Of a stretch of 64,000 bases of DNA, positions 10,610 through 43,525 are shown piece by piece. The translations under genes and the position numbers were made by a program. Positions within the stretch are counted from its first letter, which is position 1; each line of letters opens with the position of its first letter. The notes beneath the pieces were generated by a model. That model was given only the letters and a program-made list of their open reading frames with translations, was not told the origin of the DNA and made no database searches. The stretch is from the sequence record NC_016163.1; one strand, 5' to 3'.

Positions 10610-11653
10610 ATGAATGAGAATGCATTATTTATTTGTAATCTTGAAAAAATTAAATATACTGTATTAAGAGAAAATGTTTTAAACAATGCTCCGTTTGATA
10701 ATAAACGTATTAATCTCTATATTGATACAGATTATATTTTTAAAGCATTTAGAACCGAATACACTAAAGAAGCTACTAAGAAATTATCTTCTAAAGGTCA
10801 AATTAATGCTTTAATGGTAGAATTTATTAATTTTGTCTCCCACTACAAACATTTTTTGACAGATTTTTTTGAAGCTGAAGTTCGCACTTTTATTCTTCAT
10901 GGATATCATTCAGAGACTATTGGGTTCTATGACAAAGGTGAAGACTTTGATGAAGAAGATTTAGCATTCTTTGATAAAGTAATTGAAAGAATGAAAAAAC
11001 TTACTTCTTTTACTAGCGATGTATTCGTAGTAGAAAGTAAAGCTATCCCTAAATTCGCTATACCTTATTTATTTAGTAAAGAGCCTAATGTAAAAGGTAG
11101 AAGTGCTCCATTTAGAGCTAAGAAACCAATTAATCTGTTCATTACAAAGAATCCTAAGTTCTTGCAATATTCATTTTTAATGGATAATTTTTATTTACTT
11201 GATAAAAGTTTATATAATTCTCTTCATAGTATGCAACCATTGCATAAAAAGCTTAAATCTGTTACCAGTGTGGATCGTTACTATCTGGTTCCGTATTTAA
11301 CTATTTGCGGATTTGATAGACATGAAGGTTTAAGAAAAATTACCAATGCTAAGTTCTTTAGACCTAGTGATCTACAAAACTTCTTTACTTATGAAAATAG
11401 TAGCAATACTATGCATATTATAGATTTTGCAGAAAAAGAAATCTTCAAAGATAGTTTATCTCATGATGAAAAAATGTTGATATCTGACAGGGTTCAAATG
11501 GTAGATATCCCGCATTTAATTCGTTCTGCAAAAGAAAGCGATAAGTTAGAAGTGATTAACTCATTAAGTGGTCATATTGAAGACTCAGATGCTATCCATC
11601 GTCTGAATTCAGATAATTTCCGTAACTCTCTCAATATTGATTATCTCCTATAA
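10610..11653 (+). CDS. FEN/PIN-like 5'-3' nuclease fold protein, probably catalytically degenerate
   Basis: INLYIDTDYIF N-terminal strand; the usual acidic motifs appear replaced (ITKNPKFLQ where SxDxDxxQ is expected). Confidence 0.45.
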   Translation: MNENALFICNLEKIKYTVLRENVLNNAPFDNKRINLYIDTDYIFKAFRTEYTKEATKKLSSKGQINALMVEFINFVSHYKHFLTDFFEAEVRTFILHGYHSETIGFYDKGEDFDEEDLAFFDKVIERMKKLTSFTSDVFVVESKAIPKFAIPYLFSKEPNVKGRSAPFRAKKPINLFITKNPKFLQYSFLMDNFYLLDKSLYNSLHSMQPLHKKLKSVTSVDRYYLVPYLTICGFDRHEGLRKITNAKFFRPSDLQNFFTYENSSNTMHIIDFAEKEIFKDSLSHDEKMLISDRVQMVDIPHLIRSAKESDKLEVINSLSGHIEDSDAIHRLNSDNFRNSLNIDYLL

Positions 11654-11664
11654 CACGATATTAG
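11652..11664 (+). promoter_or_regulatory. Putative late (nvRNAP) promoter
   Basis: AACA-CGATAT-TAG. Confidence 0.75.
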
Positions 11665-11741
11665 TATGAATATAATTTCCTTAACGGCTTATACGGTCGT
11701 TAAGGATTATATTCTTTTTTTTTTGTTAATGGGTTATTAAA

Positions 11742-14294
11742 ATGGCAAATAATGACTTACAAGAAATGCTAAAACGTTTTAGATATCCGTTAAATTCAAC
11801 TTCTATGCAACCTATAACTGGTAAGCAAGAAGGCGCGGTATCTATGTGTAAGGCTAATCTAGTAACTTTACAAGAGTTACAAAGAGAGGCTGATTCAGCA
11901 TATACAAAATTTGATATAAGTGTAAAAGAAGCTAGATCTTCTGTAGGTAATACAATAAATCCTAATATACCCGCTTCTAGTGTTACAGCCCAATATTTAA
12001 TGGGTCGTATAGATATGGGTGTAAGTGTAGCCGTACGTCTTCAAAATGAAATAAATAAAGTACTAAATCCAAATCTACCGGATTATGTCAAGATGGCATA
12101 TACCCCAAGTGTAGTAGATTTTGGAGGAGTAACACAGGCTTTTAATACATATTATACAAAGCTTAAAGATATTGAGAAACGAGCAGCTAAGATAAAGGAA
12201 GATAACAAACCTGAAATCAAGGAAGCTACAGTTTCATCAGCTAATACTGAATATTCTCTAGAGAATAAGACTTTCCTGAAGTCTATGTATGATATTTCTA
12301 TACAAATGATTCTTCCAGACAATACTCAGAACGATATAACTCAATATATTACAGATATCCTATATTCATTTAATGCGGATAATATGGTAATGCCAATTTA
12401 TTCTGTAAAAATGAAGATGCCAGCAACGCTATATGATTCTATAAGAAAATATTTTGAAGGAATAAAATGGTATATTACTGTCAAATTATATACTAAAACT
12501 TCTGATACTAGTCAAGATCAATTCGCTATACCTTCTTTAATTAAAGATTTTGAAGAATTAGTAGCTATTGATCCTACATTTAGTCCCGGAAACGATGATT
12601 CCAATAGACCTGAAGGTGTTCTGCCTATTTATACCATGAAAATGGATTTTGTTTCTGCTAAGGGGAATGCATTAAACTCCATAGTAAAAGCGAGAGTATT
12701 TTCTAACTGTAAATTAATTGATGTTATTTCAGCCCTATGTAGTCAAGTCAAGCAGGAATATGAATCAACTGGTAATGTAGACTCAAGTAAAGAGATTAAG
12801 TATACTATTTCTCCTCCAGATAATACTCAAACTTATGAGCAAATCATAATAAAGCCTGGTAGTTTTACGGCTACTCTTCATGCTTTACAAAGAGAGTATG
12901 GAGTATATAAAACAGGTATTCAAGTACTATTTGATGGAAATCATAATATAAAAGATACTAATGGTGTTAAGCCAATTAGTTATTTAACTATTACGGATAA
13001 AGGTGGTACTGCTCCTGCTACAAATAATATAACTGATGCTTTATTTGAAGTAGTAGATCCTAAATATGTAAAAAATATGATTCATGAAACAGGTTACTTA
13101 ATCAATAATGATACAAGTAGTGTTACTGTTAGAACTTTTGAACCTTATCACCTTGTAAAAACTAACTCCGACAGGCTTAGTAGAGGTGATTCAGTAAGGG
13201 TAATGAGTACTTCTCAGAACTCAGCTTCTAGTACTGTATGTGACAATCCAAATGATTTTTCTACATACAATCAAAGATTTTATTATAGTAAATTTGATAA
13301 TCCGTATGCATTAACTCAGTTGCAAGATAACATCCGTGAAAGAAATCAGATGTTAACTATAGAAGCTAGAGACATAGATATTTTTACTTTTAATGCTAAT
13401 CTAAATTATCAAGTTAAATTTTATAGTAGAGACGATGAAACTGGATCAGGTGCATATAGACTCAAAAAATATGCGGCTTATTTCGGATTTACTCGTTCTG
13501 GTGTTAAGAGTAGGGTAGAAACATCTGCCGTTTTTGAATTCGGAAATATACCTGAATTGAGAGAAAATGGGGTAACAGCCCCTAGGAAGACTTACGCAGA
13601 GAAGGTTGGAAGCACTAATAAAAGTGCGTCAAATTCAACTACTCTAAAAGGTGCTACCTCTAGTGGTACAGGTGGTGGTTTTACTTCTAACTCATCTAAT
13701 ACTCCATCAGTTCCATTTAAAACTAACTTTAGAAATAAAAAAGACTATTTAGGTAATACCATTCCAGAAACTATACCTGCTAGTTACAAGATGTCTCAAC
13801 AAACTACGTTCGAAGATGTCTATGTAACTCAAACAGGTACTGATTTATATAAAGGTAATGGGTTAGCAAATAATTTTGCATATTTTATAAATGCTCAAAG
13901 GTTTGCATCAGAAATTCTAGATCCTTTATTTAATTCTGAAGGTAAATCTAAATTAGTTGATTTTTATAAGTATGAAACAGATGGTTCTTATGGCGCTAGT
14001 GCTCACTTAGTAGCTTTAGCTGCAGATGTATCATTCAATAAGAGTGGTGATGAATTAATCAAGTCATTTATCAAGATATCTAATATGGGTCTTGATTTTG
14101 ATCAGTTAATTCTTCAAGGCGATGGTAGTTCATGGAAGTACATTCATATTGGTAAGAATATGAATGAAACTAATCGTAAACAAGTAATACTATCACCTAC
14201 ATCAGTAAATAATGACTACAAAGTAATCAATAAAGCCTTAACTGAAGAAGATGTACCTAAACTTAAAATAACTGAATTTAGAAAATACTTTTAA
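11742..14294 (+). CDS. Virion baseplate hub-like protein with C-terminal M15-type peptidase domain
   Basis: 850 aa behind a late promoter; Ser/Thr/Gly linker, then SAHLVALAAD...FDQLIL...YIHIG. Confidence 0.65.
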   Translation: MANNDLQEMLKRFRYPLNSTSMQPITGKQEGAVSMCKANLVTLQELQREADSAYTKFDISVKEARSSVGNTINPNIPASSVTAQYLMGRIDMGVSVAVRLQNEINKVLNPNLPDYVKMAYTPSVVDFGGVTQAFNTYYTKLKDIEKRAAKIKEDNKPEIKEATVSSANTEYSLENKTFLKSMYDISIQMILPDNTQNDITQYITDILYSFNADNMVMPIYSVKMKMPATLYDSIRKYFEGIKWYITVKLYTKTSDTSQDQFAIPSLIKDFEELVAIDPTFSPGNDDSNRPEGVLPIYTMKMDFVSAKGNALNSIVKARVFSNCKLIDVISALCSQVKQEYESTGNVDSSKEIKYTISPPDNTQTYEQIIIKPGSFTATLHALQREYGVYKTGIQVLFDGNHNIKDTNGVKPISYLTITDKGGTAPATNNITDALFEVVDPKYVKNMIHETGYLINNDTSSVTVRTFEPYHLVKTNSDRLSRGDSVRVMSTSQNSASSTVCDNPNDFSTYNQRFYYSKFDNPYALTQLQDNIRERNQMLTIEARDIDIFTFNANLNYQVKFYSRDDETGSGAYRLKKYAAYFGFTRSGVKSRVETSAVFEFGNIPELRENGVTAPRKTYAEKVGSTNKSASNSTTLKGATSSGTGGGFTSNSSNTPSVPFKTNFRNKKDYLGNTIPETIPASYKMSQQTTFEDVYVTQTGTDLYKGNGLANNFAYFINAQRFASEILDPLFNSEGKSKLVDFYKYETDGSYGASAHLVALAADVSFNKSGDELIKSFIKISNMGLDFDQLILQGDGSSWKYIHIGKNMNETNRKQVILSPTSVNNDYKVINKALTEEDVPKLKITEFRKYF

Positions 14295-14300
14295 ATAAAC

Positions 14301-14329
14301 CCCTATATCCCCGAAAGAGGGATATAGGG
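14301..14329. terminator. Bidirectional hairpin terminator, CCYWTATCC family
   Basis: CCCTATATCC...GGATATAGGG between convergent genes. Confidence 0.82.
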
Positions 14330-14336
14330 AGTTTTA

Positions 14337-15185
14337 TTACTCTTTTCCTGATACTAGTTTAGATGAATAATCTGAATGAATCTTCAACCAATTATTCATA
14401 AACTTAGCAATTTCGCCTAAGAATGAAACATTATTAAATAATGCTTTAGTTCTTCTGGTAAGCATATCTAATGAAATTTGTTTACCATTCATCTTATAGA
14501 GTTTAAATAACTGTTCTATCTTAGCTTTCAACTCTTCTAAGTGAGAAATAGTCTTAAGGAGCTGTTCATTAGTAGAATTAAACTGACCCATAATCATTTG
14601 AAGCTTTTGTTTAAAGGCTTCAACTTCTTGAGCAGTATATTCATTTTCAGTTAAATCAGTAAATCTGGAAAGGTTATTTCCAAAAATCTCAGTTACTAAC
14701 TGTTTATCTTGAGCTGGAATGTCTTTCATACCATCAGCATTACCATTATAGGATAAACTCGCTTTAGCAGCTTCTGGAGACGTCTCTTGAGCAACAAACG
14801 AGATAATATTTGTCACACCGTTGGCAAATTTATCTGATTCTTCTACAAATTTTTCAAAATTAGCAAAGCCTTTAAGTTTTACTTTATCGCCTTTACTTTT
14901 TCTTTCAAACTTACCAAGGATTTTAGCAAAAATTTTCTTAGCAAAATCTCTTAGCTTAATCAGATATTTTCTAACAGTTTCTATGATCCGTTTAAGGAAT
15001 TTGATGATTTTTTCTTTAAACGATTCAGCGGCTTCAGAGTTTTCACCTTCAGGAGAATTTTCATCAGCTTCTTTTAAAATAATTGCACTATTAAATAATT
15101 CTTCTGCAAGAATTACAACTTTTTTAAATTGAGAACTTTCTTCTTCCATTAGGGAAAAAAGTTTATCAGAATAGATGAAGTCCAT
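14337..15185 (-). CDS. Putative internal head protein
   Basis: Acidic N-terminal propeptide ending ILKE, then amphipathic helix FKEKIIKFLKRIIETVRKYL. Confidence 0.65.
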   Translation of the reverse strand: MDFIYSDKLFSLMEEESSQFKKVVILAEELFNSAIILKEADENSPEGENSEAAESFKEKIIKFLKRIIETVRKYLIKLRDFAKKIFAKILGKFERKSKGDKVKLKGFANFEKFVEESDKFANGVTNIISFVAQETSPEAAKASLSYNGNADGMKDIPAQDKQLVTEIFGNNLSRFTDLTENEYTAQEVEAFKQKLQMIMGQFNSTNEQLLKTISHLEELKAKIEQLFKLYKMNGKQISLDMLTRRTKALFNNVSFLGEIAKFMNNWLKIHSDYSSKLVSGKE

Positions 15186-15186
15186 C

Positions 15187-15978
15187 TTAGAATCCTTGGT
15201 CTGAATACATTTTGGAATTACCTAAACCCTTATCGGACATCATGCGTACCATAGATTTAGAATTGGCGCTACCTCCAATTACTCTAAAGAAAGGACTTCT
15301 TATAGCAACTTTATTGACTAAAGCAATTACTACACTTACCAATCTTTCCATCTGATCTAAGAGACGAATATTGGGGGACTGAATATTATTGTCAACAAAT
15401 TGATGCTGTATTTCTTTAAGCTCTTTAATAAGCATAGGGAAAAACTTATCTATTATCCAAGAACAGCCTTGTCTTAAAGCTTGAAGATTAGTTCGTATTT
15501 GCTCTAAAAAGATAGTATTGTTACTATCAGTAGCATTACCATTAAGATACATATTAGCGTTATCTAATTGGTCGCATAGTTTAGAGATATGGTTATTTAC
15601 ACTCAAAATAGTACTAAATGAGTTATCAAAGTCAGAGATATTTACATCAAATAAGCTATGTAATACTCTTTCACCCATACTTAAGCATTCAATTCTACCA
15701 TTAAGTGATTTTAATGTAGATGCTAAATCATATTCATGTGATTGTGAATATCGATTTACTAATTCATTATGGCTAAAGAATATTTTATTGATACTATTAT
15801 CATTCAAGAAACCTTCTAATCTAGCAATAAGCTTATCTGGAACCGAATTAGTCAAAGCTGTTTGCATATCTTGAAGGTAAGTAGTTTCTGTAAGAATAGC
15901 TACCTTTAATGGGATAGAACATTCATGATGTTCTAGGAGATTATCAATCTCGTTAAATGTGTAATCTAGGTTATTCAT
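15187..15978 (-). CDS. Putative virion (head) protein
   Basis: 263 aa, AILTE motif, late gene block; near-match promoter TACA-N6-TAG upstream. Confidence 0.55.
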   Translation of the reverse strand: MNNLDYTFNEIDNLLEHHECSIPLKVAILTETTYLQDMQTALTNSVPDKLIARLEGFLNDNSINKIFFSHNELVNRYSQSHEYDLASTLKSLNGRIECLSMGERVLHSLFDVNISDFDNSFSTILSVNNHISKLCDQLDNANMYLNGNATDSNNTIFLEQIRTNLQALRQGCSWIIDKFFPMLIKELKEIQHQFVDNNIQSPNIRLLDQMERLVSVVIALVNKVAIRSPFFRVIGGSANSKSMVRMMSDKGLGNSKMYSDQGF

Positions 15979-16034
15979 TTTTACTTTATCCGTTAACGGT
16001 TACTAATAAATTGTACTAGAAAATAGAAAGAAAA

Positions 16035-16063
16035 CCCCATATCACCTTTAAGATGATATGGGG
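16035..16063. terminator. Hairpin, CCYWTAT family
   Basis: CCCCATATCA...TGATATGGGG. Confidence 0.78.
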
Positions 16064-16083
16064 AGATAACTAGCCTAAACTAA

Positions 16084-16863
16084 TTATTTTTTATCTGCTT
16101 CTTTAGCCGCTTTAGCTTCTGCTGCTTTATCAGCTGCTACACCACGAGCACCGTGGGTAGCTTTAAACAGAGCATGAACAAACTTGGAAGACAGAGAAGC
16201 AAGTTTAGAAGCTTGACGCTGAGCTTTGTTCAGAGTAGTAACAACAGCTGCATCACCGCCGCCAGCAGAGGCAGCTTTAGCCTTCAGGCTTTCTGCAACT
16301 TTCTTAACACGATCGTTAGCAGCTTTAGCCATAGTTTCTACTTTAGAAACATCAGTAGCCAGGAACTTAACGCCTTCACCTTTTTCAGCAGCGGCGCGAT
16401 AAGCAGCCAGACCTTCCTGATAAGCAGCATCGAATTCATCTTTACCAAGAGCATTGGCAGCTTTTTCGATAGCGGAAACCAGTTTAGGGGCATTTTTAAA
16501 GCTTTCTGGAAGTTCTAGAGTTTTAGCGCCCAGAGCAGCTTTCAGACGTACAACTTGTTTGCTAATGAAAGCAGAAACGGCATTGTACACTTTCATGATA
16601 GCTTCATAGGCACGTTGTGCCATAGCTTTCACTTTTTCTTTAACATTACCCAGGAAACCAGCTTTCTTATCTTCTTTAGCAGCGTCACCGCCTTCTTCTT
16701 CAGTCAGAGCAGAAAGTTGTTTTTCCAGTTTATAGTCAGCAACCATAATGGATTCATTCAGAATCGCGGAATCACTAATAACGTCAGTCAGCTCAGCAAG
16801 GGCTTCAAACAGGGAAGGTGCTTCTACTTTCTGGGTATTGGCGGATTCTAAAAACATAGCCAT
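16084..16863 (-). CDS. Abundant Ala/Lys-rich internal head protein
   Basis: Acidic propeptide with ILNE/ALTE, amphipathic helix, strongly biased codons. Confidence 0.7.
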   Translation of the reverse strand: MAMFLESANTQKVEAPSLFEALAELTDVISDSAILNESIMVADYKLEKQLSALTEEEGGDAAKEDKKAGFLGNVKEKVKAMAQRAYEAIMKVYNAVSAFISKQVVRLKAALGAKTLELPESFKNAPKLVSAIEKAANALGKDEFDAAYQEGLAAYRAAAEKGEGVKFLATDVSKVETMAKAANDRVKKVAESLKAKAASAGGGDAAVVTTLNKAQRQASKLASLSSKFVHALFKATHGARGVAADKAAEAKAAKEADKK

Positions 16864-16921
16864 GATTTATTTCCTTTATATAAAGATTTTTGATCTGTTG
16901 CAACAGAATATGACTTAATGA

Positions 16922-16934
16922 CTATCTTAATGTT
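16922..16934 (-). promoter_or_regulatory. Putative late promoter
   Basis: AACA-TTAAGA-TAG. Confidence 0.75.
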
Positions 16935-16971
16935 AGTGTAATTACAAAATAAAATTCGCAATTTGCTTTAT

Positions 16972-17774
16972 TTAGGCGATTCTAACATCTTGATTAAAGT
17001 TAACTAACATAGCGGCCATTCCTTTGGTAAGGAAAGTAGATAATTTTAATAGACTATTAATGGATTTCTCAGATTCATCATATATATCCATTTTTCTTGA
17101 AAAATCTCCATCCTTTAAATTTCCTGAAGAATTTTCTTCAATTCTTTTAAAGAGCATTATAGTACTTAATTGAATATCTTTAGATATTTCTTTAACTTTT
17201 TCTAAAAAAGATCAACGTTGTTTACATCCACTAAAGTACCTTTACCCATTAAGCTATCCCCACCAGTATTTTTAGATAAAAGTAATTCTATTCTATCTCT
17301 AGCATCGGAGCTTTTTAAAGTAGAATCGGATTGCAGGTCTGAAATAATTTTTGGTGCTATATTAATGAAATCATATAATCCTGAAGGAATATGCATCTGA
17401 ATTGTAATTTTTCCATTAATATTTTCAACACCCCCTTTACCATCAGAAGTATACTTTCCAATAATAACTTTTTCTACATCTACTTCCCGTTTGGATTTCT
17501 TAACAGTTTTTTCATTAACAAATACTTTATTTAAGTAAGTTCTTAATTTTTCTTTCATTTTAACTGCATAGATCAAGATATTCTGAGCAGCCTTAAGTAA
17601 ATAAGTCTTTAACTTGAGAATCACTTTCCTGAAATCACCTTTAGCTTCACTTAGGGTTTCATAAGTTTCGGTATTCTCAAGTAAACTATCTAAATTATCA
17701 AAAGATGCTTCCAAAAGAGATATATTAGGCTCTTTCATTACCTCATCTTTTATATAGGATTCTATAAATAACAT
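16972..17774 (-). pseudogene. Internal head protein paralog split by a -1 frameshift in a T6 run (ORFs 17202-17774 and 16972-17157)
   Basis: GAT CTT TTT TAG stop; one extra T continues LEKVKEISKDIQLSTIMLFKRIEE... into the downstream ORF, giving about 267 aa, like its paralogs. Confidence 0.7.
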
Positions 17775-17796
17775 GTGATTTTCCTTTATAAATTTT

Positions 17797-17809
17797 CTAA
17801 TTATGTGTT
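17797..17809 (-). promoter_or_regulatory. Putative late promoter
   Basis: AACA-CATAAT-TAG. Confidence 0.75.
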
Positions 17810-17846
17810 GAAATTACCCTATTCACCGAAATGAATAGGGTAATAA

Positions 17847-18593
17847 TTATTTATTGATAAGTAATGAATGGCTAACTAAATCAGATTTTAAGCCAGCTGC
17901 CATTAGAAATACATCTAATGTCTGTACCGCTTGACCGGATTTAGCTGTATCTACTTCCTCAATAGAAGCATTACCAAAGAGAGAAATATCTTGCAAGAAT
18001 TTATTCTTAGCCTCAATATTATCCCCTCTAGCACCTAATACTTCCTTGATAATTGGAGAGTAACCATTAGCATCTTCTTTACTAGGATCATCAAGAGTTA
18101 CTGAAAGTAGGGCTTGAGTATCATAGTCGGTAAATCTACCAGACTTATTATCCTGATTAAGAGAACCAGTTAATCTTGAACGAACATTACCAGAAGATAT
18201 ATCAACATTACTTTTAACTTTCTTAGAAAGTAATTGTTGCATACGTTTCATATGCACCCAAAGAACAGGTACTTTATAAGGTGTACGGATTACTTTACCA
18301 TCAGTAGTTTTGTGTCTAATATAGACATATTCTTCTAATGGTACATTGATATGCTTAGCAGCTTTTTCAATATTATCTAAAGTAATATCATTTTTACCGT
18401 ATAAATCCATTTCTACATAGAACTGATTATCTTCAGAAGATTTCATCTTTTTAAAGTATTCAACAAAATCTTTATCAGACATGGATTTAAATAATTCCTT
18501 ATATCGATTACTATTCATACCACTTGGATCCATAGCACTAATAGTATCAATAATAAGTTTCTCAGCTTTTTTACGATTCTTTGCAGTAATCAT
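17847..18593 (-). CDS. rpoB: Virion RNA polymerase beta subunit, C-terminal part (phiKZ gp149-like)
   Basis: MKRMQQLLSKK...RSRLTGSL...SGRFTDYDTQAL corresponds to the beta C-terminal HLVDDKMHARS...GQRFGEMEVWAL region. Confidence 0.78.
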   Translation of the reverse strand: MITAKNRKKAEKLIIDTISAMDPSGMNSNRYKELFKSMSDKDFVEYFKKMKSSEDNQFYVEMDLYGKNDITLDNIEKAAKHINVPLEEYVYIRHKTTDGKVIRTPYKVPVLWVHMKRMQQLLSKKVKSNVDISSGNVRSRLTGSLNQDNKSGRFTDYDTQALLSVTLDDPSKEDANGYSPIIKEVLGARGDNIEAKNKFLQDISLFGNASIEEVDTAKSGQAVQTLDVFLMAAGLKSDLVSHSLLINK

Positions 18594-18595
18594 AC

Positions 18596-21303: not shown

Positions 21304-21316
21304 CTAATGAGTTGTT
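21304..21316 (-). promoter_or_regulatory. Putative late promoter
   Basis: AACA-ACTCAT-TAG. Confidence 0.75.
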
Positions 21317-22368: not shown

Positions 22369-22381
22369 CTAAAACCTTGTT
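22369..22381 (-). promoter_or_regulatory. Putative late promoter
   Basis: AACA-AGGTTT-TAG. Confidence 0.75.
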
Positions 22382-26011: not shown

Positions 26012-26024
26012 CTAAACTTTTGTT
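26012..26024 (-). promoter_or_regulatory. Putative late promoter
   Basis: AACA-AAAGTT-TAG. Confidence 0.75.
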
Positions 26025-26083
26025 CCATATAAGTAAATATTAATAAATTTCAATTAATATTAAAAGAATAAATCTAATTATAG

Positions 26084-26096
26084 AACAAGTGTTTAG
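26084..26096 (+). promoter_or_regulatory. Putative late promoter (divergent partner)
   Basis: AACA-AGTGTT-TAG. Confidence 0.75.
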
Positions 26097-28381: not shown

Positions 28382-28409
28382 CCCATATCCTCTATCAAGG
28401 GGATATGGG
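28382..28409. terminator. Hairpin, CCYWTATCC family
   Basis: CCCATATCC...GGATATGGG. Confidence 0.8.
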
Positions 28410-28430
28410 GTATTTACTCTTTTTTCGTTA

Positions 28431-30647: not shown

Positions 30648-30675
30648 CCCATATCCTTCTAAAGAGGGATATGGG
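30648..30675. terminator. Hairpin, CCYWTATCC family
   Basis: CCCATATCC...GGATATGGG. Confidence 0.8.
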
Positions 30676-30695
30676 TTTCTAATAAGGAAAATAAA

Positions 30696-31647: not shown

Positions 31648-32049
31648 ATGGATGATTTACAATATTATTCATCGATGGATACATTAGATTACGCAGTTAG
31701 CGGGGTATTCCCATTCCTAAAATTCTTAGGGTGTTTAATAGGGGGATTCAGTTTAGGGTGGGTAGCATTTAATAGCATTATTCCACGTATTTTCAAAAGA
31801 CCTATACAGGACAATAATACCGCAGCATTTTTAACAGTCTTCTTTACTTGGACTCTAACATATACAGTGATGAAGTATAATAGAGATACCGTAGTAGAAA
31901 TACTAGTGGGATGTTCACATATACCTAATGCTGAATTCATTAAACCATTAGAAATGTGTACGTTCCCTGTAGAAACTGAATCAGGTACAATAAAAGTCAG
32001 TGTAGATAAGAGTTATAACTTTATCCTTCCAATAGAAATGGGGAAATAG
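31648..32049 (+). CDS. 2-TM membrane protein with C-terminal Cys pair (paralog 3)
   Basis: Two hydrophobic segments, basic loop, C-x14-C. Confidence 0.75.
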   Translation: MDDLQYYSSMDTLDYAVSGVFPFLKFLGCLIGGFSLGWVAFNSIIPRIFKRPIQDNNTAAFLTVFFTWTLTYTVMKYNRDTVVEILVGCSHIPNAEFIKPLEMCTFPVETESGTIKVSVDKSYNFILPIEMGK

Positions 32050-35215: not shown

Positions 35216-35227
35216 AGGTGTAAAATA

Positions 35228-35497
35228 ATGAGTGAATATTCCGGTTGTTTTACTTGGTCAGATTTGGATAAGAAACATAAGCTTAAATTGATTAGTAAAA
35301 AGTTTCTTGAAAAATACCCTTATCTATCTAAAAAAGTTTGCATTGGAGACTCATTCACAATTATCAAAATGGGAGGTCAAGAAGACTTCACTTATGGTAA
35401 TTCAATGTGGGCACACATTAAACACAATCATCTAGGTATTGAAATTATGATTACTCGTGATGATTCTGATTTCTTCTATCATAAATACAGCCGATAA
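35228..35497 (+). CDS. Hypothetical protein
   Basis: 89 aa, AAGGTG RBS. Confidence 0.7.
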   Translation: MSEYSGCFTWSDLDKKHKLKLISKKFLEKYPYLSKKVCIGDSFTIIKMGGQEDFTYGNSMWAHIKHNHLGIEIMITRDDSDFFYHKYSR

Positions 35498-35511
35498 GTT
35501 GTAATAAAACT

Positions 35512-35540
35512 CCCTATACCCTCTTTATGAAGGTATAGGG
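35512..35540. terminator. Bidirectional hairpin terminator, CCYWTAT family
   Basis: CCCTATACC...GGTATAGGG between convergent genes. Confidence 0.8.
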
Positions 35541-35554
35541 AATTATTTTTTTTT

Positions 35555-35857
35555 TTATGAAAGTTGTCTTACTCTACCAAATTCAAACTCTCTTTCCTCG
35601 ATATAATCGGAAGATTCAGAGAAATAGGTAGTTAATACTTGTTCAGCAAAGCCTACTACTTGACCATCAAGTTCCATGTTATTTCTCATAGCACGAACTC
35701 TTTTAGCTGCATCTTTGAAGTCTTTACCATAGAAGTTGATACCAAATTTCTTACCATCTTCATCAAAATATTCAGCTGCAAAGAGATGCCATTCTTCATT
35801 GTCCACTACTACTGTAGTAGGATTAGCTCTAGCATTGGTAACTTTTACGTCGGTCAT
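35555..35857 (-). CDS. Hypothetical protein
   Basis: 100 aa, AAGG RBS. Confidence 0.7.
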   Translation of the reverse strand: MTDVKVTNARANPTTVVVDNEEWHLFAAEYFDEDGKKFGINFYGKDFKDAAKRVRAMRNNMELDGQVVGFAEQVLTTYFSESSDYIEEREFEFGRVRQLS

Positions 35858-35869
35858 ATTAAACCTTAC

Positions 35870-36277
35870 TTAGTTTTTTGCTAATTTAGCCTTAGCTTTA
35901 CCAAGGAACTCGTTATTGAGTTGAGTAGTGATAGTAATAATAGCCTGATTGTAATTCTTAATATCAGCTGCATCACCACTAGTATTAGCGATACGTTTTA
36001 AACCACCTGCAGCTTTAATCCATTTTTCCAGTTTAGACACTAAACCTTCCAGAGAGGATTTATCATCTGCTGCATCAAGCATACCCTGAAGTTTGTCAGT
36101 ATGCATTTTCTTAAATAGTTCTTTTTTCTCACTATCAGGGAAGTTAGAAATGCCTAAAGAATGCATTGCTTTTCTAAAAGTAAAAGTACTATTAGTTTTA
36201 AAGTTACCCTTAGCTTCTTCCCAACCAACACCTTCCAATAGCTGGCATACTAATTCATTATTACCCATGATTTTCAT
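35870..36277 (-). CDS. Putative small virion protein
   Basis: 135 aa, QLLE motif, late promoter. Confidence 0.6.
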   Translation of the reverse strand: MKIMGNNELVCQLLEGVGWEEAKGNFKTNSTFTFRKAMHSLGISNFPDSEKKELFKKMHTDKLQGMLDAADDKSSLEGLVSKLEKWIKAAGGLKRIANTSGDAADIKNYNQAIITITTQLNNEFLGKAKAKLAKN

Positions 36278-36294
36278 CCAAAGTGATTAAATTT

Positions 36295-36307
36295 CTATGA
36301 AAATGTT
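36295..36307 (-). promoter_or_regulatory. Putative late promoter
   Basis: AACA-TTTTCA-TAG. Confidence 0.75.
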
Positions 36308-36309
36308 CA

Positions 36310-37719
36310 CTAGATTGATAAAGTAAATAATAAATTACCACAGTCATAAATTATACCATATCCATTATTGAGCATATTCTGTTGCTCTGATAATGATTCA
36401 TCAAAATTTTCTAATTTTTCACTAAGTAATCTCTTCTGGAAATTTGCTCTATGAAAAACTTGGCCGTAAAACTTATCCGTATACCAGTATCCTGGATTAG
36501 ATACTGATGTTAATTCGAAACCATTTTTAATATAAACTTCACCAAAAGAATATCTGAGATTAGCATAAGAAATAATAGAATTTATATTCAAGTTAGATTC
36601 TTTAAAATCTTTTATGGCGAAATTAAGCAATTTACTAAAACCACCAACTATATTAATATCTGAAATAGAAGCAAATCTTAATAATTCTAATGTATTTTCA
36701 TCATTTCTATTAAGTAATTTTCTAGTTTTGGAGAAGGTTATTACTGCACATAACTCATCTTCAAAGAATAATCCATAATTGAAGGATGCGTTACATTTAC
36801 CTTGCATATGATATGTATCTAAGAATACATTTGATTCTTTAGGGGTAATCTTTTTAACTGCACATTTGCGAGCAAAAATTTTATATGAATTGGCTTGTAA
36901 AAGGCTTTTTAGTCTAGATTTTAATTTTTTTCTAGTCCTAGCCCATTCACAGTCAAAAATATTATAAATTCTTATACCTTGATCATAAGCCTCCTCCATT
37001 TTTTCAAAAATATGATATTTTTTTCTAGCCCTATTAGTTTTATTTATACTATGCCAAAATATACCATTTACTTCTATACCAATCTTCATAGATGGTATGT
37101 ATATATCAATTTCTTTCCGTTTATCACTAGGAAGTAATCCTTTAACATTTTTTAAGATTTCAATATCATTTGGTAGAATTTTACGAATAAACATATAAAT
37201 TTCATTTTCTACTTTTGAATCACCATTACTTTTATTTTGATGGTGTAAATGAGGGGATCCATTACCCATCATCAGCTCTCTAGGTCGGATAAAAAATGGT
37301 TTACCAGTAGTTTTGCATATTACTTCAATTTTTGTATTTGTATCTTTATATTTAGATAGGCTAAAATCCATTTTGTCTTTTACAGAAGGATATTTAGCTT
37401 CTAATTTACTTACAAACGTTTCTAAAGAGAAACGTTGAGTATCAGCAGCTTTTTTATAACGGCAATGAGGGCATCCTGTTTTGATTTCTTTTTTACGTAC
37501 AGCTATAAGATTAGTAGGAGTCATCAAAAAAGATTTTTTACATTTATTGTGGATTACTTCTATTTTATCTTGTACCGATTTATATTTTATTGTAGGTGAT
37601 AAAGAGTATTCATTATTAATATTACACTCATTAAAGCTATCAATAAACTTATTCAAATTATTGATATAAATTTTTGATGAACTACCATCAGTTAATTCAT
37701 CAAATTTAGAAATTTGCAT
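36310..37719 (-). mobile_element. Free-standing homing endonuclease gene (DUF723-like repeats, Vsr-like nuclease, GNAT-like C-terminal domain)
   Basis: KIEVIHNKC...GCPHC and KIEVICK repeats; EIDIYIP...GIEVNGIFWH; FLDTYHMQG...ELLRFAS...SYANLRYS. Confidence 0.8.
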
Positions 37720-37724
37720 AAAAA

Positions 37725-37765
37725 CCTCTCATGAACAATTTAACTAATTTTATGTTCATGAGAGG
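37725..37765 (-). promoter_or_regulatory. RBS-sequestering hairpin with a late promoter overlapping it
   Basis: 13-bp perfect arms CCTCTCATGAACA / TGTTCATGAGAGG; AACA-TAAAAT-TAG at 37756-37744; GAGAGG RBS in the 3' arm. Confidence 0.8.
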
Positions 37766-37792
37766 AGTTCATTAAGAAAATTTATGGAAATA

Positions 37793-39067
37793 TTATTTTG
37801 AGTTTATATCTTCTATATGATCAAAAATATCAAACTCTTTACCTTGTACTGACAAGTCATGGAAAGACTTCATCGAAAGGTTCATAATACGAGCCGAAAT
37901 ACGAGATACATGAAGACCGATATTTTTTACACCTAAACGATAGAACATATCACCTAAACAGTGGTGGCAATAATGTTTATTTTGACATAGTAAAGGTGTA
38001 CGCATCTTAACCGTTTTACCAACATACTTCTCTAGCAATGCAGGAGTTAGACATACTAATTCATTCTTATCGTAGATGTAACGGTAGCGATATTCACGCT
38101 TATTGTCACCAGTAAGCTCTACGTTAATAGTTTTAGTAGTTCCGCAATCACTATCAGGTTTATCGGCAATAATACCACTAAATGCAGCGTTAAACAGCTT
38201 GGTTAAGTAACCACCTTTTTGGGTATCAACTGCACGTCCAGCAGCACCTAATACTGCTAGGTCAGCATGAGGAGCAATATCTTCTTTAGCTACACCATCC
38301 ATAAGGTTAGAAGTAACGATACTAAAGGATGTAGGGTCATCAGATTTAGGGGCAATTCCACGGAAAATAGAGTTTACTTTAAAGTTGTTATTCCATGAAC
38401 CGTTAAACCCGCTATCATAGATCATTTTACCTGTAGCACCTATTTCTTCTAGGTCTTTTTTGGCAAAATCAATCATTTCATTCTCTAGTTTACCAAATGC
38501 CATCACATCATTACTTTCAATAACCTCACGGTTATCTTTAAGCATCTGATCACGTTTTTTCTTAACTTTCTCAGAAGGATGAATTGTTTTAATATCTAGA
38601 CTAGGAATAGAATAAATAGCGGAAGTGTAGCCTAACCATTGCATTCTATCAATGAAATCTTTAACGACATCGGATAAAATGTATTTATCTACATATGCAT
38701 CAGAGATAACACGGTTTAACCCACCAATCACACCAGCAGTGGTAGGTTTATTGATATATTCTAGAATAGTCGCCAAATGAGAATTCTCAATGCCGTTAAT
38801 TGTACCTTTTGCAGAGCCAATAAAAACGTTAAAAACGATTCTACCAGCATTGGTCTCGGTACCTACAATATCTTTCCAGTTTTTAAACTTTCTAAGAATT
38901 GAATCGGCGGGAACTAGAGATTCTTCGATTTTGATACGAGTACGACTATCCATGACAGGTTTATTTGTGGCTGCATCAACCGCAAATACATTTAGGAGAA
39001 AACTTTTAGTAATATCTTCTTCAGTAATCCCTAAAATTGTCTTTTCTGGATCATTTATATCAAACAT
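37793..39067 (-). CDS. rpoC: Virion RNA polymerase beta-prime subunit, C-terminal part (phiKZ gp80-like)
   Basis: Bridge helix GAAGRAVDTQKGGYLTKL...DCGT, Zn site RTPLLC...CHHCLG, trigger loop MNLSMKSFH. Confidence 0.92.
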   Translation of the reverse strand: MFDINDPEKTILGITEEDITKSFLLNVFAVDAATNKPVMDSRTRIKIEESLVPADSILRKFKNWKDIVGTETNAGRIVFNVFIGSAKGTINGIENSHLATILEYINKPTTAGVIGGLNRVISDAYVDKYILSDVVKDFIDRMQWLGYTSAIYSIPSLDIKTIHPSEKVKKKRDQMLKDNREVIESNDVMAFGKLENEMIDFAKKDLEEIGATGKMIYDSGFNGSWNNNFKVNSIFRGIAPKSDDPTSFSIVTSNLMDGVAKEDIAPHADLAVLGAAGRAVDTQKGGYLTKLFNAAFSGIIADKPDSDCGTTKTINVELTGDNKREYRYRYIYDKNELVCLTPALLEKYVGKTVKMRTPLLCQNKHYCHHCLGDMFYRLGVKNIGLHVSRISARIMNLSMKSFHDLSVQGKEFDIFDHIEDINSK

Positions 39068-39084
39068 TTTCTATGTTCCGAAGA

Positions 39085-39328
39085 AAAAGAAATAAATACG
39101 CCTATGACCGTGAAGATCATAGGCGCAGGACTTTATTTTCTATCAGTGATCCAATGAAAGTATTTCTTAGTATTAATCGTCGTCAGAATCTCCACCACCT
39201 ACAGGGAGAAATGAGTCAAACCATGAGATAAGATTTTTATTTTCATTGGAAGAGATAGAGTTATTCATTCTTATTAGCCTGAGTTGATGCTTGGTAATAA
39301 GAACAGATTGATCTACAACGAGACCGCA
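39085..39328 (-). ncRNA. Candidate structured RNA of about 240 nt (or 31-aa ORF 39268-39173)
   Basis: Bounded by an early-type promoter (39342-39326) and a terminator CGCCTATGA...TCATAGGCG plus U-tract; long-range stems TCCAATGAAA/TTTCATTGGA, TCTATC/GATAGA, TTCTTATTA/TAATAAGAA. Confidence 0.5.
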
Positions 39329-39342
39329 TTAAAATAATATAT
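39326..39342 (-). promoter_or_regulatory. Putative early promoter
   Basis: ATATATTATTTTAATGC on the minus strand. Confidence 0.65.
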
Positions 39343-39351
39343 CTTTGAAGA

Positions 39352-40038
39352 TTATGCGTATACGTAGTATTCTACAATCAGACCTTTACCAGTTTCTGCT
39401 GATAGAGGTTCTGTTTCAAAGGTAATACGGGAGAAGATTTTAATGTCGTTATAAGTATTATCTGAAGGCACTACTGCGGAGAATAGGCCAAGTTCAGAAA
39501 TACGTGAACCACGGGCATCTTTCTCGTTAATAGTCAGAGTAGCTTTAACGTAGTAGTCATCTTTAACTGTATCAGTAATCAATTCAACCTTAGTAAAGGT
39601 TTTCTTCATATACTGAGTATCGGAACCACTAACCTTAGTATCGGTATAGAAGTTAGCATCTTCTGAAGGCATAGGGTTAGCAGTGTTAGCAATACGGAAT
39701 GGCACTGCAGTGTTAAGCTGAGTATCTGCTGAAGTAGGAGTGATAGGGTTGAATGGATCAGATACAGGAGCACCGCCACTACCGATACCGAACAGACATA
39801 CATAGCGATTATGTAGAAGAGTTTCGTTCTCTGAGCTATAAGGAAGCTTAAACAGTTTACGCAGAGTGAATTCACGACCAGTCTGAACTACAAGGTTTCT
39901 TTTAACTTGCAAAATATTATTAGTGACGGGATCACGAATAACAATAAAGTTTTCACGAGCCTTATTAGCACGAACAGCATCCTGAATCAGTAATTTTTCA
40001 TCGTGTGTCATGACACGCTGAGAATCAATTTCAAACAT
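39352..40038 (-). CDS. Baseplate / tail-fibre attachment protein (DUF3751-like fold)
   Basis: LFGIGSGG...TLTI...ISELGLF...FSRITF pattern of fibre N-terminal domains. Confidence 0.6.
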   Translation of the reverse strand: MFEIDSQRVMTHDEKLLIQDAVRANKARENFIVIRDPVTNNILQVKRNLVVQTGREFTLRKLFKLPYSSENETLLHNRYVCLFGIGSGGAPVSDPFNPITPTSADTQLNTAVPFRIANTANPMPSEDANFYTDTKVSGSDTQYMKKTFTKVELITDTVKDDYYVKATLTINEKDARGSRISELGLFSAVVPSDNTYNDIKIFSRITFETEPLSAETGKGLIVEYYVYA

Positions 40039-40065
40039 TGTTAAATTCCTATTTATGATATAGAA

Positions 40066-40078
40066 CTAAAAGTTTGTT
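40066..40078 (-). promoter_or_regulatory. Putative late promoter
   Basis: AACA-AACTTT-TAG. Confidence 0.75.
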
Positions 40079-40088
40079 GAGGAAGATC

Positions 40089-42683
40089 TTAATCTTCACC
40101 AGTAACCGTTATTACAAAATTATCCTGCATTAACATTTTAGATTTAACTGGTAATGAGGTAATGGGAACGGCTTTCTCTGAGCCAAAATCTGGTAGAGCG
40201 TCTATATAAAAGTTACCTTTTGTAGATTTAATAACTTCTTTCAATACATTGTATTCCTTAATAGAGTAATTAGCTAATTTCTTTTTAAATACGTCATTAA
40301 AGTTAATTTTATTCACACTATCCATAAATGACGAATAAGTCTGGAAATCTCTTAATTTAGCATTTTTATCATAGATGTGATATGTGGAATTAGGAACAAA
40401 ATTGTCATCAATTTCTAAGGTATCTGTAGAGAAATCATTATTATGGTAAGTAGTGTTAATTACCGGATAATCTCTTACAAATACAGTATCAAACTGATTA
40501 AAATATGAATTAGCTACCTTGATTTGATCGTACATATTGAACTTAATACTATCTTTCATAGTAAAAGTACCGTACCTTACCAAATCATCATGAATATTCA
40601 CTCTATCAAAGAGGTTAAACCATTTATTACTGTAAATGAAATCATAGAAGTAATCACCTTTAGGAATATAATCTCTTAATGGTAATACACTTATATTACG
40701 GAAACTATCTCGAAGATGTAAAATTTCTTTATAATGGAAATCGGCATTAAATACTTGCTTATCCTTGAAATAAATCCAGTCAGTAGTAACCTGTTTACCT
40801 AAGTAAGTAAAGATACTAGTAATATCATGTAAATGAACTTTATCATAATAATGGAAATTTCCTAAGAATACATATCTATCCCAAGTAGCACCAGTAACAT
40901 GGTCTTCAATGGGAATAATACTATCCATAGATTCCACACCGTCGAATATACGACCGTCTAGTTCTTCTTTAAGCACCATGAAAAAACTAAGTTCTCTAAG
41001 AGTTACAGTAAATGACTTAAATACTTCGATTACGTCTCTAAGATAACTGGAAAGGATATCTACAGATGTAGAACCAAAGAATAAATCCATATCATTGAGA
41101 TATGACTTAACTACATCAGTTACATACGTAATTTCACGTTCTATCTCAATTTGTCTTTCTTCAGGGTCTTCAATATTGCGAATAGCGTTAATGAAATTAT
41201 AAATGTCAATATTACGACTTAAAATGTAGTCTGTATAGGTTTCAGCTTTATTGAAGAGAGAATAATTAAGTTTTTGAGTAAAACGGGCATAATAAATCTG
41301 TTTTAACTGTTTATAGCGTTTATAATCAGTTTCAGTATGCAAAGCATCTTTGATATTAGAGTGGATACCAATATTGTAATCAAATACCTCTAAAGTTTTT
41401 TCCTTATCAAAAGAAGTTTCTTTAGTCATATCCTTAACTGGATATAAGTTAGGGTCTACTGGCTTGGTATTAACTATATCTACTGGATAGGTTATAGTAC
41501 CACTTCTATCTTTAAATTGATAGATGGATACAATATTCTCTAAATCATATTCAATGGTATCTACTACACCTTGATAATCGAGAGTCAAGATTTGTAAAAG
41601 AACTAAAGTATCTTCTAGAGTAATTGGATCCAAAGATATCTTAGATGCAGTAAAAGTCATGAATTCTTTACTACTATAACTTTCACGAATTTTACGTAAT
41701 AAATTTAAGAGATAAACTGTATTGAGACCTTCTTTAGCTAATTCAAAGCCTGACTCAATGGAGAAGTATTTAGATTGGACATAATCAAAATTGTATCTAG
41801 CAATTTCTGTATTAGTCGTTCTCCAAGTATCATCTCCAAGAGTTACATCAGCAATGGTGTTATCATTATAATCACCAGCTTTAATAGCTTTAGATAATGA
41901 ATCAATACGGATATTATGAGAGATAAAACGAGGGTTATTGATGATAGTGTTTGTACCATCAGTTTCCTTACGAGTCTCATCTCTTACTAAATAGTATTTA
42001 AAAATATTAATATTATCGAAATTAAAAATATCAAGAATATTAATAATAACTTTATCAGTACCCTTGTTTCTTATAAGCGAATTGATATTTTTTGCAATTT
42101 TCTGCTTATACTGTAAAGGTACTGATTTAAAATAACTGATACCGAATGACAAGATAAAATCATCAATCATTGATTCATTCATCATATCAATATCATATGG
42201 ATACTTCAACCAGTTATCAATGTAGTTAATTAATGCCATGATATTAATTGACATTAAACAGAAGTTTCTATAATTCTCTTCCGTTTCCATTGATTTAGCA
42301 TAGTTGGTAGCGTAGAAGTACGTTAAACACTTCTTATAAATTGGCCCATACTGACTTAGGTATGGATATGTAGTTTCCATATCACTATCAGTATAGATAA
42401 TATCTAAGTCTTTTGCTCTTCGACTAGTATAATATGGAATCTGATAAGTATCAAAAAGATTCTTATAGTAAGGGTTTAATTCTACATAATCATTGATGAT
42501 CTGCTGTCGTTCAGCTTCTGTATGATTATCCATTTTTAAATAAGCTGCCATATATTCTGAAGAGGCTTTCATAGAATTTTCAGTCTCTTGAGAATCAGCA
42601 GATAATTCATCTTTAAATACCATCTTGATAATATATTGAACTAGATTTTCAATATACTCAAGGGTATTATCATTTATTTTCAT
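40089..42683 (-). CDS. Baseplate wedge protein (T4 gp7 / P2 gpI-like) with C-terminal repeats
   Basis: LIRNKGTDKVIINILDIF (gpI-like KGT motif); degenerate 18-20-aa repeats in the last third. Confidence 0.62.
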   Translation of the reverse strand: MKINDNTLEYIENLVQYIIKMVFKDELSADSQETENSMKASSEYMAAYLKMDNHTEAERQQIINDYVELNPYYKNLFDTYQIPYYTSRRAKDLDIIYTDSDMETTYPYLSQYGPIYKKCLTYFYATNYAKSMETEENYRNFCLMSINIMALINYIDNWLKYPYDIDMMNESMIDDFILSFGISYFKSVPLQYKQKIAKNINSLIRNKGTDKVIINILDIFNFDNINIFKYYLVRDETRKETDGTNTIINNPRFISHNIRIDSLSKAIKAGDYNDNTIADVTLGDDTWRTTNTEIARYNFDYVQSKYFSIESGFELAKEGLNTVYLLNLLRKIRESYSSKEFMTFTASKISLDPITLEDTLVLLQILTLDYQGVVDTIEYDLENIVSIYQFKDRSGTITYPVDIVNTKPVDPNLYPVKDMTKETSFDKEKTLEVFDYNIGIHSNIKDALHTETDYKRYKQLKQIYYARFTQKLNYSLFNKAETYTDYILSRNIDIYNFINAIRNIEDPEERQIEIEREITYVTDVVKSYLNDMDLFFGSTSVDILSSYLRDVIEVFKSFTVTLRELSFFMVLKEELDGRIFDGVESMDSIIPIEDHVTGATWDRYVFLGNFHYYDKVHLHDITSIFTYLGKQVTTDWIYFKDKQVFNADFHYKEILHLRDSFRNISVLPLRDYIPKGDYFYDFIYSNKWFNLFDRVNIHDDLVRYGTFTMKDSIKFNMYDQIKVANSYFNQFDTVFVRDYPVINTTYHNNDFSTDTLEIDDNFVPNSTYHIYDKNAKLRDFQTYSSFMDSVNKINFNDVFKKKLANYSIKEYNVLKEVIKSTKGNFYIDALPDFGSEKAVPITSLPVKSKMLMQDNFVITVTGED

Positions 42684-43032
42684 TACTAGAACCCTTTTCT
42701 AATTCTGCAGCCATTCCATCATAAATCTTAAAGGTGGAACCTAAAGATTTATAGCAACCAATATGACCTTTCTGAAGACTATTAATTGCAGATAATAATT
42801 CTTGCTCAGGAATATTTACATTCTGAGGGTCGGCTTTATACTTGGCTAATGACGGAATAAGTTCATATAGAGATTTAGGTTTAGGGCAGCTTTGTTTAAT
42901 ATTTTCTTTATCTAGCTTAGGAACTACAATTTCAGTTTTGGTAACTACTCGATCTACATATTCAACCTTTGGAGCACAACCAGCTAATACGATAAAAGAA
43001 GTTAATGCTAGTGCTTTAATAATGGTTTTCAT
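42670..43032 (-). CDS. Rz1: o-spanin (outer membrane lipoprotein)
   Basis: Signal peptide with lipobox LAGC; Pro-rich with further Cys; directly follows the i-spanin. Confidence 0.78.
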   Translation of the reverse strand: MKTIIKALALTSFIVLAGCAPKVEYVDRVVTKTEIVVPKLDKENIKQSCPKPKSLYELIPSLAKYKADPQNVNIPEQELLSAINSLQKGHIGCYKSLGSTFKIYDGMAAELEKGSSNENK

Positions 43033-43464
43033 TTACAGATCCTCAAGATTATCAACTACAGTATCAAAATTATCAGCGATTTTTACTAAAGCTTTGGAAG
43101 ACTCTTTACTGATTACTTTATCAGCTGGAACTTCTTTGATAATAACTTCAACATTTGATTTGTCGATGTCATTAAGTTTATTGTCTTCTGCTTTTAAGTT
43201 AGCAATCTCTGTCTGTTGAATGGCATTTGCAGCCTCTAATTTTTTATTCTTATCTTGCTCAGCTTTTAGTGCAGCTTCTAATTGGTCTGATACAAGTTTC
43301 TGAGCAGTGTACTTACCTTCCCACTCAGTTGATGCTTTTGCGTTATCTGCAATGCCGTTTAAAAATAAACCAATAACTACCACTACGATAGCTATGCAGA
43401 TTGCAAGGATAATATTCTTATATGAGGACACAAAATTATTTAGTATACTGTCCATTCTCTTCAC
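43033..43464 (-). CDS. Rz: i-spanin
   Basis: N-terminal TM IILAICIAIVVVVIGLFL followed by a coiled coil. Confidence 0.75.
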   Translation of the reverse strand: MKRMDSILNNFVSSYKNIILAICIAIVVVVIGLFLNGIADNAKASTEWEGKYTAQKLVSDQLEAALKAEQDKNKKLEAANAIQQTEIANLKAEDNKLNDIDKSNVEVIIKEVPADKVISKESSKALVKIADNFDTVVDNLEDL

Positions 43465-43499
43465 CTTTAAGGTATATGATTCGTTATTTTATTGAAAAA

Positions 43500-43525
43500 C
43501 TATATAGATGTTAACATGAATATAG
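43500..43525. promoter_or_regulatory. Back-to-back divergent late promoters
   Basis: Minus AACA-TCTATA-TAG (43512-43500) and plus AACA-TGAATA-TAG (43513-43525), joined as the palindrome TGTTAACA. Confidence 0.78.

Follow-up and report, generated by a model that had tools for sequence, protein, structure and literature searches.

AACA-N6-TAG in the uracil-DNA Yersinia phage phiR1-37: a probable late promoter of the AR9 type

The element and its copies in the window

The Yersinia phage phiR1-37 carries, in front of virion genes, the element AACA-N6-TAG, in which the blocks AACA and TAG are separated by six unspecified bases. In this study, a stretch of 64,000 nucleotides (nt) from record NC_016163.1, covering record positions 124001–188000 and called the window here, was analysed together with the complete genome; intergenic DNA makes up 7.8% of the window and 8.8% of the complete genome. 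We believe that this element is very probably the phiR1-37 late promoter, that it belongs to the uracil-dependent type of phage AR9, and that its reader is the five-subunit non-virion RNA polymerase (nvRNAP) encoded by the phage. In what follows, virion genes are those whose proteins were identified by mass spectrometry, and expression classes and profiles are those of Table S2 of PMC4848604.

On the plus strand, the copy at 11652–11664 lies 77 nt from the ATG of virion gene g196, with a hairpin and U-tract (11679–11705) in between, which is atypical. The copy at 26084–26096 (+) lies 48 nt before virion gene g209 and heads the unit g209-g210; on the minus strand, the copy at 26012–26024 stands 21 nt before virion gene g208 and heads g208-g207, and the two copies form a divergent pair. 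A second divergent pair fills positions 43500–43525 of the 92-nt intergenic region between g236 and g237: the copy at 43500–43512 (−), 44 nt before the annotated start of virion gene g236, heads g236-g235-g234 and abuts, back to back, the copy at 43513–43525 (+), which lies 31 nt before virion gene g237 and heads g237-g240. The other minus-strand copies are found at 16922–16934, 58 nt before virion gene g199 (sp24 precursor, class LATE) and inside the annotated micro-open reading frame (micro-ORF) g200; at 17797–17809, 22 nt before g202 (unknown function, class LATE), with an annotated terminator just upstream; at 21304–21316, 20 nt before the annotated start of virion gene g205, where it heads g205-g204-g203, again with a terminator just upstream; at 22369–22381, 36 nt before virion gene g206; at 36295–36307, 26 nt before the annotated start of virion gene g229, heading g229-g228; at 37744–37756, 24 nt before the HNH homing endonuclease gene g230 and inside the annotated inverted repeat 37725–37765; and at 40066–40078, 27 nt before virion gene g233 (class LATE).

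These are the twelve sites listed in the initial annotation of this DNA, and all of them are present; its entry 26096(+) is the last base of 26084–26096, whereas the other two plus-strand sites had been entered by their first base. The list was incomplete, since the window holds 15 perfect copies, including one further copy in promoter position, together with probable variants at position −8 (counted from the predicted start, the A of TAG, as +1). The further copy, at 62432–62444 (+), is intergenic and lies 60 nt before g263 (DUF7338, class LATE), with a terminator hairpin (62452–62472) in between. Of the last two, the copy at 54472–54484 (+) lies inside g249, 111 nt before the RecA-like gene g250, and may be an internal promoter or have arisen by chance, and the copy at 31903–31915 (−) is antisense inside g218, where no antisense RNA has been reported, and is probably due to chance. 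According to the annotation, the gene behind every site has a virion, lysis or endonuclease function. Ten of its twelve sites do precede virion genes (g196, g199, g205, g206, g208, g209, g229, g233, g236 and g237) and one precedes the HNH endonuclease g230; g202 has no family match, and no lysis gene was verified behind the window copies. With g263, which encodes the DUF7338 protein, g230 and g202 make up the three remaining genes behind the 13 promoter-positioned copies.

Two annotated features overlap the element. The start codon of g200 (16848–16961, −, 37 aa) lies upstream of the predicted transcript start, and its counts in Table S2 are 3.5, 2.3 and 0.3; g200 is probably not a gene. An annotated "PHIRE" early promoter at 26020–26044 (−) overlaps the AACA of the late motif at 26012–26024. 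Its fit to the GATATATTATTTTAATG-like early consensus is far poorer than that of the other five early promoters annotated in the window, and the annotation is probably a mis-call.

Placement, spacing and strictness

Dinucleotide shuffles of the window and of the intergenic segments served for the raw window count and for the genome-wide intergenic count, respectively. The raw number of copies in the window is at the chance level (15 against 14.0 ± 3.7); 13 of the 15 are intergenic, and all 13 lie on the strand of the next gene, where about 0.8 would be expected (P ~6e-12). The complete genome contains 69 copies, 54 of them intergenic, against 3.8 ± 2.0 in shuffles and a shuffle maximum of 11. 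When intergenic DNA was scanned blindly with all combinations of a 4-mer, a gap of 0–12 and a 3-mer, AACA-6-TAG came first (54 against 3.7, P ~1e-42). Co-orientation with the adjacent downstream gene was found for 53 of the 54 intergenic copies, with a median distance from TAG to the start codon of 34 nt; the distance from motif to start codon ranges from 17 to 77 nt. Six of the 15 genome copies counted as intragenic overlap just the last codons of the preceding open reading frame, 4–37 nt before the next co-oriented gene, and therefore about 59 of the 69 copies are in promoter position.

Both blocks and the distance between them are strict. Upstream regions on the strand of their gene contain 52 exact copies (2.2 expected), whereas spacers of 3, 4, 5, 7, 8 and 9 nt give 0–3 copies each, so that enrichment is confined to the spacer of 6. 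Single-base substitutions are all at background except at −8, where AACC occurs 4 times against 0.7 and AACT 6 times against 2.2. A position matrix of 53 aligned sites from −41 to +32 showed, beyond AACA and TAG, just an A/T preference at −2, +3 and +4; no conserved −35 or −10 hexamer was found in these sites, and the information content elsewhere upstream is at most 0.6 bit. Divergent pairs placed back to back number five genome-wide, and many sites come directly after the terminator that ends the unit before them. Avoidance within genes was examined with a shuffle of synonymous codons: the genes hold 1 antisense copy, where 12.0 ± 2.9 are expected, and 11 sense copies, where 16.9 ± 3.8 are expected, and control patterns deviated by similar factors.

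Three candidates of the variant AACT-N6-TAG lie in the window. The one at 45889–45901 (+) is 45 nt before g241, which has the expression profile of motif-led genes; the one at 60015–60027 (+) precedes the nvRNAP beta-C gene g261, 27 nt upstream of the annotated early promoter 60054–60078; and a low-confidence candidate at 44262–44274 (+) lies 25 nt before g238.

At 11652 and 62432, the stop codon of the gene before the motif shares bases with it (TAA-CA). The hairpins with U-tracts between motif and gene at these two sites have predicted energies of −22.4 kcal/mol (11679–11705) and −14.4 kcal/mol (62452–62472). The genes behind them, g196 and g263, show the motif-led profile, and their upstream neighbours do not; therefore, these two sites may work with read-through or with a hairpin-capped leader.

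Intrinsic terminators that share one stem (CCCATATCC – loop – GGATATGGG, followed by a U-tract) were seen at 28382–28410, 30648–30676 and 63091–63116, with about a dozen genome-wide. Among word families enriched in the intergenic DNA of this genome, the words of this stem rank second, and of the 24 copies of its two arms, 22 are intergenic.

Genes behind the element, the phage polymerase and competing explanations

Sites were assigned to named genes in the window and in genome positions 10–55 kb, which gave 21 of the 53 sites, against a background of 367 genes in the genome. Five of the eight sites at 10–55 kb lie before virion genes (g045, g048, g081, g082 and g094); the others precede the muramoyl peptidase g084, a lysis protein according to Table S2, the RusA resolvase g086, which heads a unit with virion genes g088 and g089, and g095, of unknown function. 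Virion genes thus stand directly behind 15 of the 21 mapped sites, compared with 70 of 367 genes genome-wide (P 3e-7), and none of the 21 is classed EARLY, compared with 92 of 341 classified genes (P 0.001).

The motif-led genes also share an expression profile. All 13 in the window show a dip in mid-infection and a late maximum, against 16 of 60 other genes (Fisher P 8e-7). Twelve of these 16 are operon mates directly downstream in motif-led units, and of the remaining four, two follow the −8 variant at 45889: g241 and possibly g244 downstream. Seen from the side of the profile, and described for genes g196–g244, the pattern early > middle < late, with late highest, marks 29 window genes and is nearly coextensive with the motif-led units. 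A monotonic rise is seen instead in g245–g250, g261 and g264–g269, which comprise replication and nvRNAP genes behind early promoters. This split between motif-led and early-promoter genes is hidden by the published four-class expression scheme.

The polymerase that would read the element is encoded in part within the window. The sigma-like promoter-specificity subunit g245 (50370–51872, +) is a homolog of AR9 gp226, the beta-N subunit g194 (8994–10544, +) of AR9 gp105 (E 3e-63), and the beta-C subunit g261 (60069–62081, +) of AR9 gp089 (E 2e-120). A search that covered the beta-N, beta-C and sigma-like subunits thus places three of the five nvRNAP subunits in the window. g245 is the one homolog of AR9 gp226 in phiR1-37 (phmmer E 8e-21; against PDB 7s01_A, E 6e-18), and its 2.1bis helix reads YSDqVIWrYL where AR9 has YSDvVIWtYL, so that V206, I207 and Y210 are kept. 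The AR9 enzyme accepts thymine when V206 is changed to glycine, and gp105 forms the other wall of its pocket for the −10 U. g194 retains R363 of gp105 and has a basic residue at the position of K375.

The DNA to be read contains uracil. In phiR1-37, T is completely replaced by deoxyuridine (dU), as determined by liquid chromatography–tandem mass spectrometry (Kiljunen 2005, cited in PMC4848604 and PMC8150378). The initial annotation had deduced dU-DNA from the motif, which was correct but had been established in 2005 by the very nucleoside analysis it proposed. Its forecast for the rest of the genome also held: no dUTPase, ThyA or ThyX was found in the phiR1-37 genome, and a single gene of the dCMP (deoxycytidine monophosphate) deaminase family lies outside the window at genome positions 66497–66823 (+; PF00383, E 4e-20). 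This gene set fits a route from dCMP to dUMP (deoxyuridine monophosphate) and into dU-DNA, and AR9 likewise has a dCMP deaminase, g221.

By homology with AR9, we propose that the nvRNAP reads the template strand, 3'-UUGU-N6-AUC-5'. The deoxyuridine at −10 would flip into a pocket formed by the 2.1bis helix of g245 (Val-Ile...Tyr) and the arginine of g194, and the U at −11 would stack on the G at −9. A thymine methyl group would clash at −10 or −11, and therefore only the phage's own uracil-DNA would be transcribed. The A of TAG would be the first base of the RNA, and the sites would head nearly all transcription units of virion genes. If phiR1-37 shares the promoters of AR9, then AR9 nvRNAP should be active on phiR1-37 DNA and inactive on phiKZ DNA, and Sokolova et al. 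reported that it transcribes phiR1-37 genomic DNA and is inactive on phiKZ DNA (PMC5449584). The late-promoter reading, already put forward in the initial annotation, is supported by all the indirect evidence, namely placement, orientation, the strict 6-nt spacer, the virion genes and the shared expression profile, and also the identity with the AR9 element and a cognate polymerase with the uracil-pocket residues.

Several observations weigh against this reading. On the transcript side, none of the ten published novel RNAs begins at a copy of the motif, and the RNA coordinates that have been published do not cover these sites. Just 5 of the 21 mapped motif-led genes are classed LATE; in the RNA sequencing (RNA-seq) of PMC4848604, most virion genes were classed "constitutive" and virion-gene RNA was detected from 2–5 min. 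Lavysh et al. blamed poor synchrony for this weak temporal resolution, which is their own interpretation (PMC5312081). About 7 of 53 sites, by a crude detector, have a strong terminator-like hairpin between motif and gene, including 11652 and 62432. On the polymerase side, F261 and Y263 of AR9 gp226, which contact the −9 G by main chain in AR9, are replaced by S and F in g245; AR9 nvRNAP was just "partially active" on phiR1-37 DNA (PMC5449584); and the invariant G at +2 has no AR9 counterpart or structural explanation. Finally, no close relative that would show conservation of the sites was found in the collections searched.

One competing explanation is that the motif acts in RNA, serving in processing, stability or translation as part of the leaders of late mRNAs begun further upstream. 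The motif is strand-specific and lies 17–77 nt before start codons, sequence alone does not separate a DNA signal from an RNA signal, and the AR9 promoter model gives no explanation for the +2 G. Against this, the divergent pairs leave no room for another promoter upstream (43500–43525 abut within their 92-nt region), many sites come straight after a terminator, and sequence and spacing match the experimentally defined promoter of the closest relative; we therefore consider an RNA element improbable. It is just as improbable, in our view, that the motif is bound by a separate late-gene activator or repressor encoded by the phage rather than recognised by the polymerase itself. Two blocks in a fixed arrangement, at a distance from the gene that is only loosely fixed, could be an operator, and the strictness at +2 could reflect a second reader. 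No candidate for such a regulator was identified; the polymerase recognition residues are conserved, and the variable distance of 17–77 nt together with the perfect match to the element read by the AR9 polymerase favours direct recognition.

Slightly less probable still is that host RNA polymerase with sigma-70 transcribes from these sites, either by itself or, as happens at T4 late promoters, under redirection by a phage factor. Table S2 does predict a "Sigma promoter" on each strand in the g081/g082, g094/g095, g208/g209 and g236/g237 regions, the g094/g095 pair being marked "verified by RNA-seq" (PMC4848604), and the papers examined report no experiment that shows phiR1-37 to be independent of host RNA polymerase. 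These four regions are, however, four of the five locations of divergent motif pairs, and we read these calls as misassigned late promoters. The aligned sites have no −35 or −10 hexamer from −41 to +32, and two blocks 6 nt apart cannot be reconciled with the geometry of a sigma-70 promoter. The AR9 polymerase has an identical element, phiR1-37 encodes that polymerase with its recognition residues, and AR9 nvRNAP transcribes phiR1-37 DNA. That the A/T-rich intergenic background yields the pattern by chance, as the raw window count (15 against 14.0) might suggest, is already refuted by the placement statistics, with 54 intergenic copies against 3.8 ± 2.0, spacer and base controls at background and 53 of 54 copies co-oriented.

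In addition to recognition by the phage nvRNAP as such, we lean towards the view that this enzyme is stricter than that of AR9 at the start and needs A at +1 and G at +2, which would make the late promoters of phiR1-37 a signal of seven specified bases readable from the genome. If this is true, the roughly 59 promoter-positioned copies would be a near-complete late-promoter map.

The gene g230 and the relatives of phiR1-37 deserve a short remark. The HNH homing endonuclease g230 (36310–37719, −) matches phrog_559 (E 3e-106), and its residues ~280–440 match the Mom DNA-modification family (PF25680, 33.8 bits at a cut-off of 27.1; phrog_1384, E 1e-8). In a phage whose DNA is modified, such a Mom-like domain may be worth attention. 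A location of the copies flanking g230 inside a mobile intron was considered and rejected: the window has no match in Rfam, and g229 none among solved structures. In the phage collection searched, phiR1-37 was the only uracil-DNA jumbo phage of a Gram-negative host, and no relative with more than 30% protein identity was found by megablast and tblastn; g245 and g209 were also compared with viral contigs, and g209 with metagenome contigs, and no relative turned up there either. The whole stretch is present in five small RNA-seq runs. In metatranscriptome and other runs of 2020–2025, 23–39% of sampled 31-mers of window positions 37700–43600 were present, and close relatives of phiR1-37 seem to exist in recent samples, though they are absent from the contig collections searched.

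Comparison with known promoters

The early promoters of phiR1-37 ("PHIRE"), which are used by the virion RNA polymerase, are likewise phage-specific and intergenic. They differ in sequence and gene set from AACA-N6-TAG, being long, A/T-rich, GATATATTATTTTAATG-like blocks before EARLY genes, and the two signals stand in tandem only at g261 and at the doubtful annotation 26020–26044. The combination of a −8 late variant and an early promoter at g261 resembles the tandem early and late layout behind the "continuous" expression of the AR9 nvRNAP genes.

The late promoter of the phiKZ nvRNAP is T-3ATG+1 (PMC7598289). It resembles the phiR1-37 element in being short, in overlapping the start site and in belonging to a homologous split-subunit phage polymerase with a fifth subunit of the gp68/gp226 type. 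It differs in that there is no upstream AACA block and the DNA contains thymine, and AR9 nvRNAP is inactive on it (PMC5449584, PMC7598289).

For phiR1-37 itself, studies could find no late-promoter consensus (PMC4848604, PMC5312081). A review held the late promoters of these phages not to be predictable bioinformatically (PMC7598289), and the AR9-type signal has been described as hard to predict de novo (bioRxiv 10.1101/2020.12.14.422802; PMC7598289). We found no report of AACA-N6-TAG for phiR1-37 in the full-text literature searched, in which the 2012 genome paper (PMC3497697) was represented through later papers only. Fraser et al. noted that the valine is conserved in the gp226 homologs of dU phages including phiR1-37 and proposed a common mechanism (PMC9209446). 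Thus the protein side of the shared mechanism has been published and the DNA side has not; the present result is an extension of a known mechanism rather than a new one, unsurprising given the 2022 prediction and useful to specialists. A map of about 59 sites readable from sequence would fill the late-promoter gap for phiR1-37. If the stricter start-site reading is true, the published view, in which sigma-70-like promoters drive "constitutive" virion genes, would be overturned, and uracil-gated recognition of promoters in the template strand would be shown to work in a Gram-negative host; the site map supplies defined templates with which to ask whether such recognition spans the Gram divide.

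The closest comparison is with AR9, whose group names phiR1-37 as its closest relative. The late promoter of the AR9/PBS2 nvRNAP is A-11ACA-N6-T-1 A/G+1, read in the template strand as 3'-UUGU-N6-AU/C-5' (PMC5312081, PMC5449584, PMC9209446). As a control, our procedure was applied to the whole AR9 genome, where it recovered this published promoter (AACA-N6-TA, 68 against 17.8 expected, at spacer 6 only). In a blind gapped-word scan of one 45-kb piece of AR9, the motif did not rank top because the piece holds too little intergenic DNA. The two bases after AACA-N6-T separate the phages. In AR9, the observed and expected numbers are 35 and 6.1 for AT, 20 and 7.2 for AA, 12 and 2.7 for AG, 6 and 2.3 for GT, and 5 and 2.7 for GA, whereas in phiR1-37 they are 52 and 2.3 for AG, 5 and 5.6 for AT, 2 and 5.8 for AA, 5 and 2.2 for GT, and 1 and 2.3 for GA. 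The observation in the initial annotation that its copies all carry TAG, tighter than in AR9, is borne out by these counts. The phiR1-37 element is tighter than that of AR9, and therefore it stands out in its genome.

By motif, spacer, placement and cognate polymerase, the criteria tested here, the phiR1-37 element belongs to the AR9-type late promoter class; the start at the A of TAG, the reading in the template strand and the dependence on uracil are what we infer for phiR1-37 from AR9. The two phages share the AACA block, the 6-nt spacer and T-A at −1/+1, and −8 is the most tolerant position in both, in keeping with the AR9 structure, where it has almost no base preference (PMC9209446). Both are jumbo phages with dU-DNA, with promoters before virion genes and with a homologous five-subunit polymerase that contains a gp226-like subunit. 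They differ in that the host of phiR1-37 is Gram-negative, the sigma-like subunits are less than 30% identical (tblastn), and promoter function in phiR1-37 is deduced by analogy. At the start, phiR1-37 fixes A at +1 and G at +2, whereas AR9 uses TAT > TAA > TAG and some TG starts, and the invariant +2 G offers a natural difference in specificity for dissecting start-site recognition in this polymerase family.

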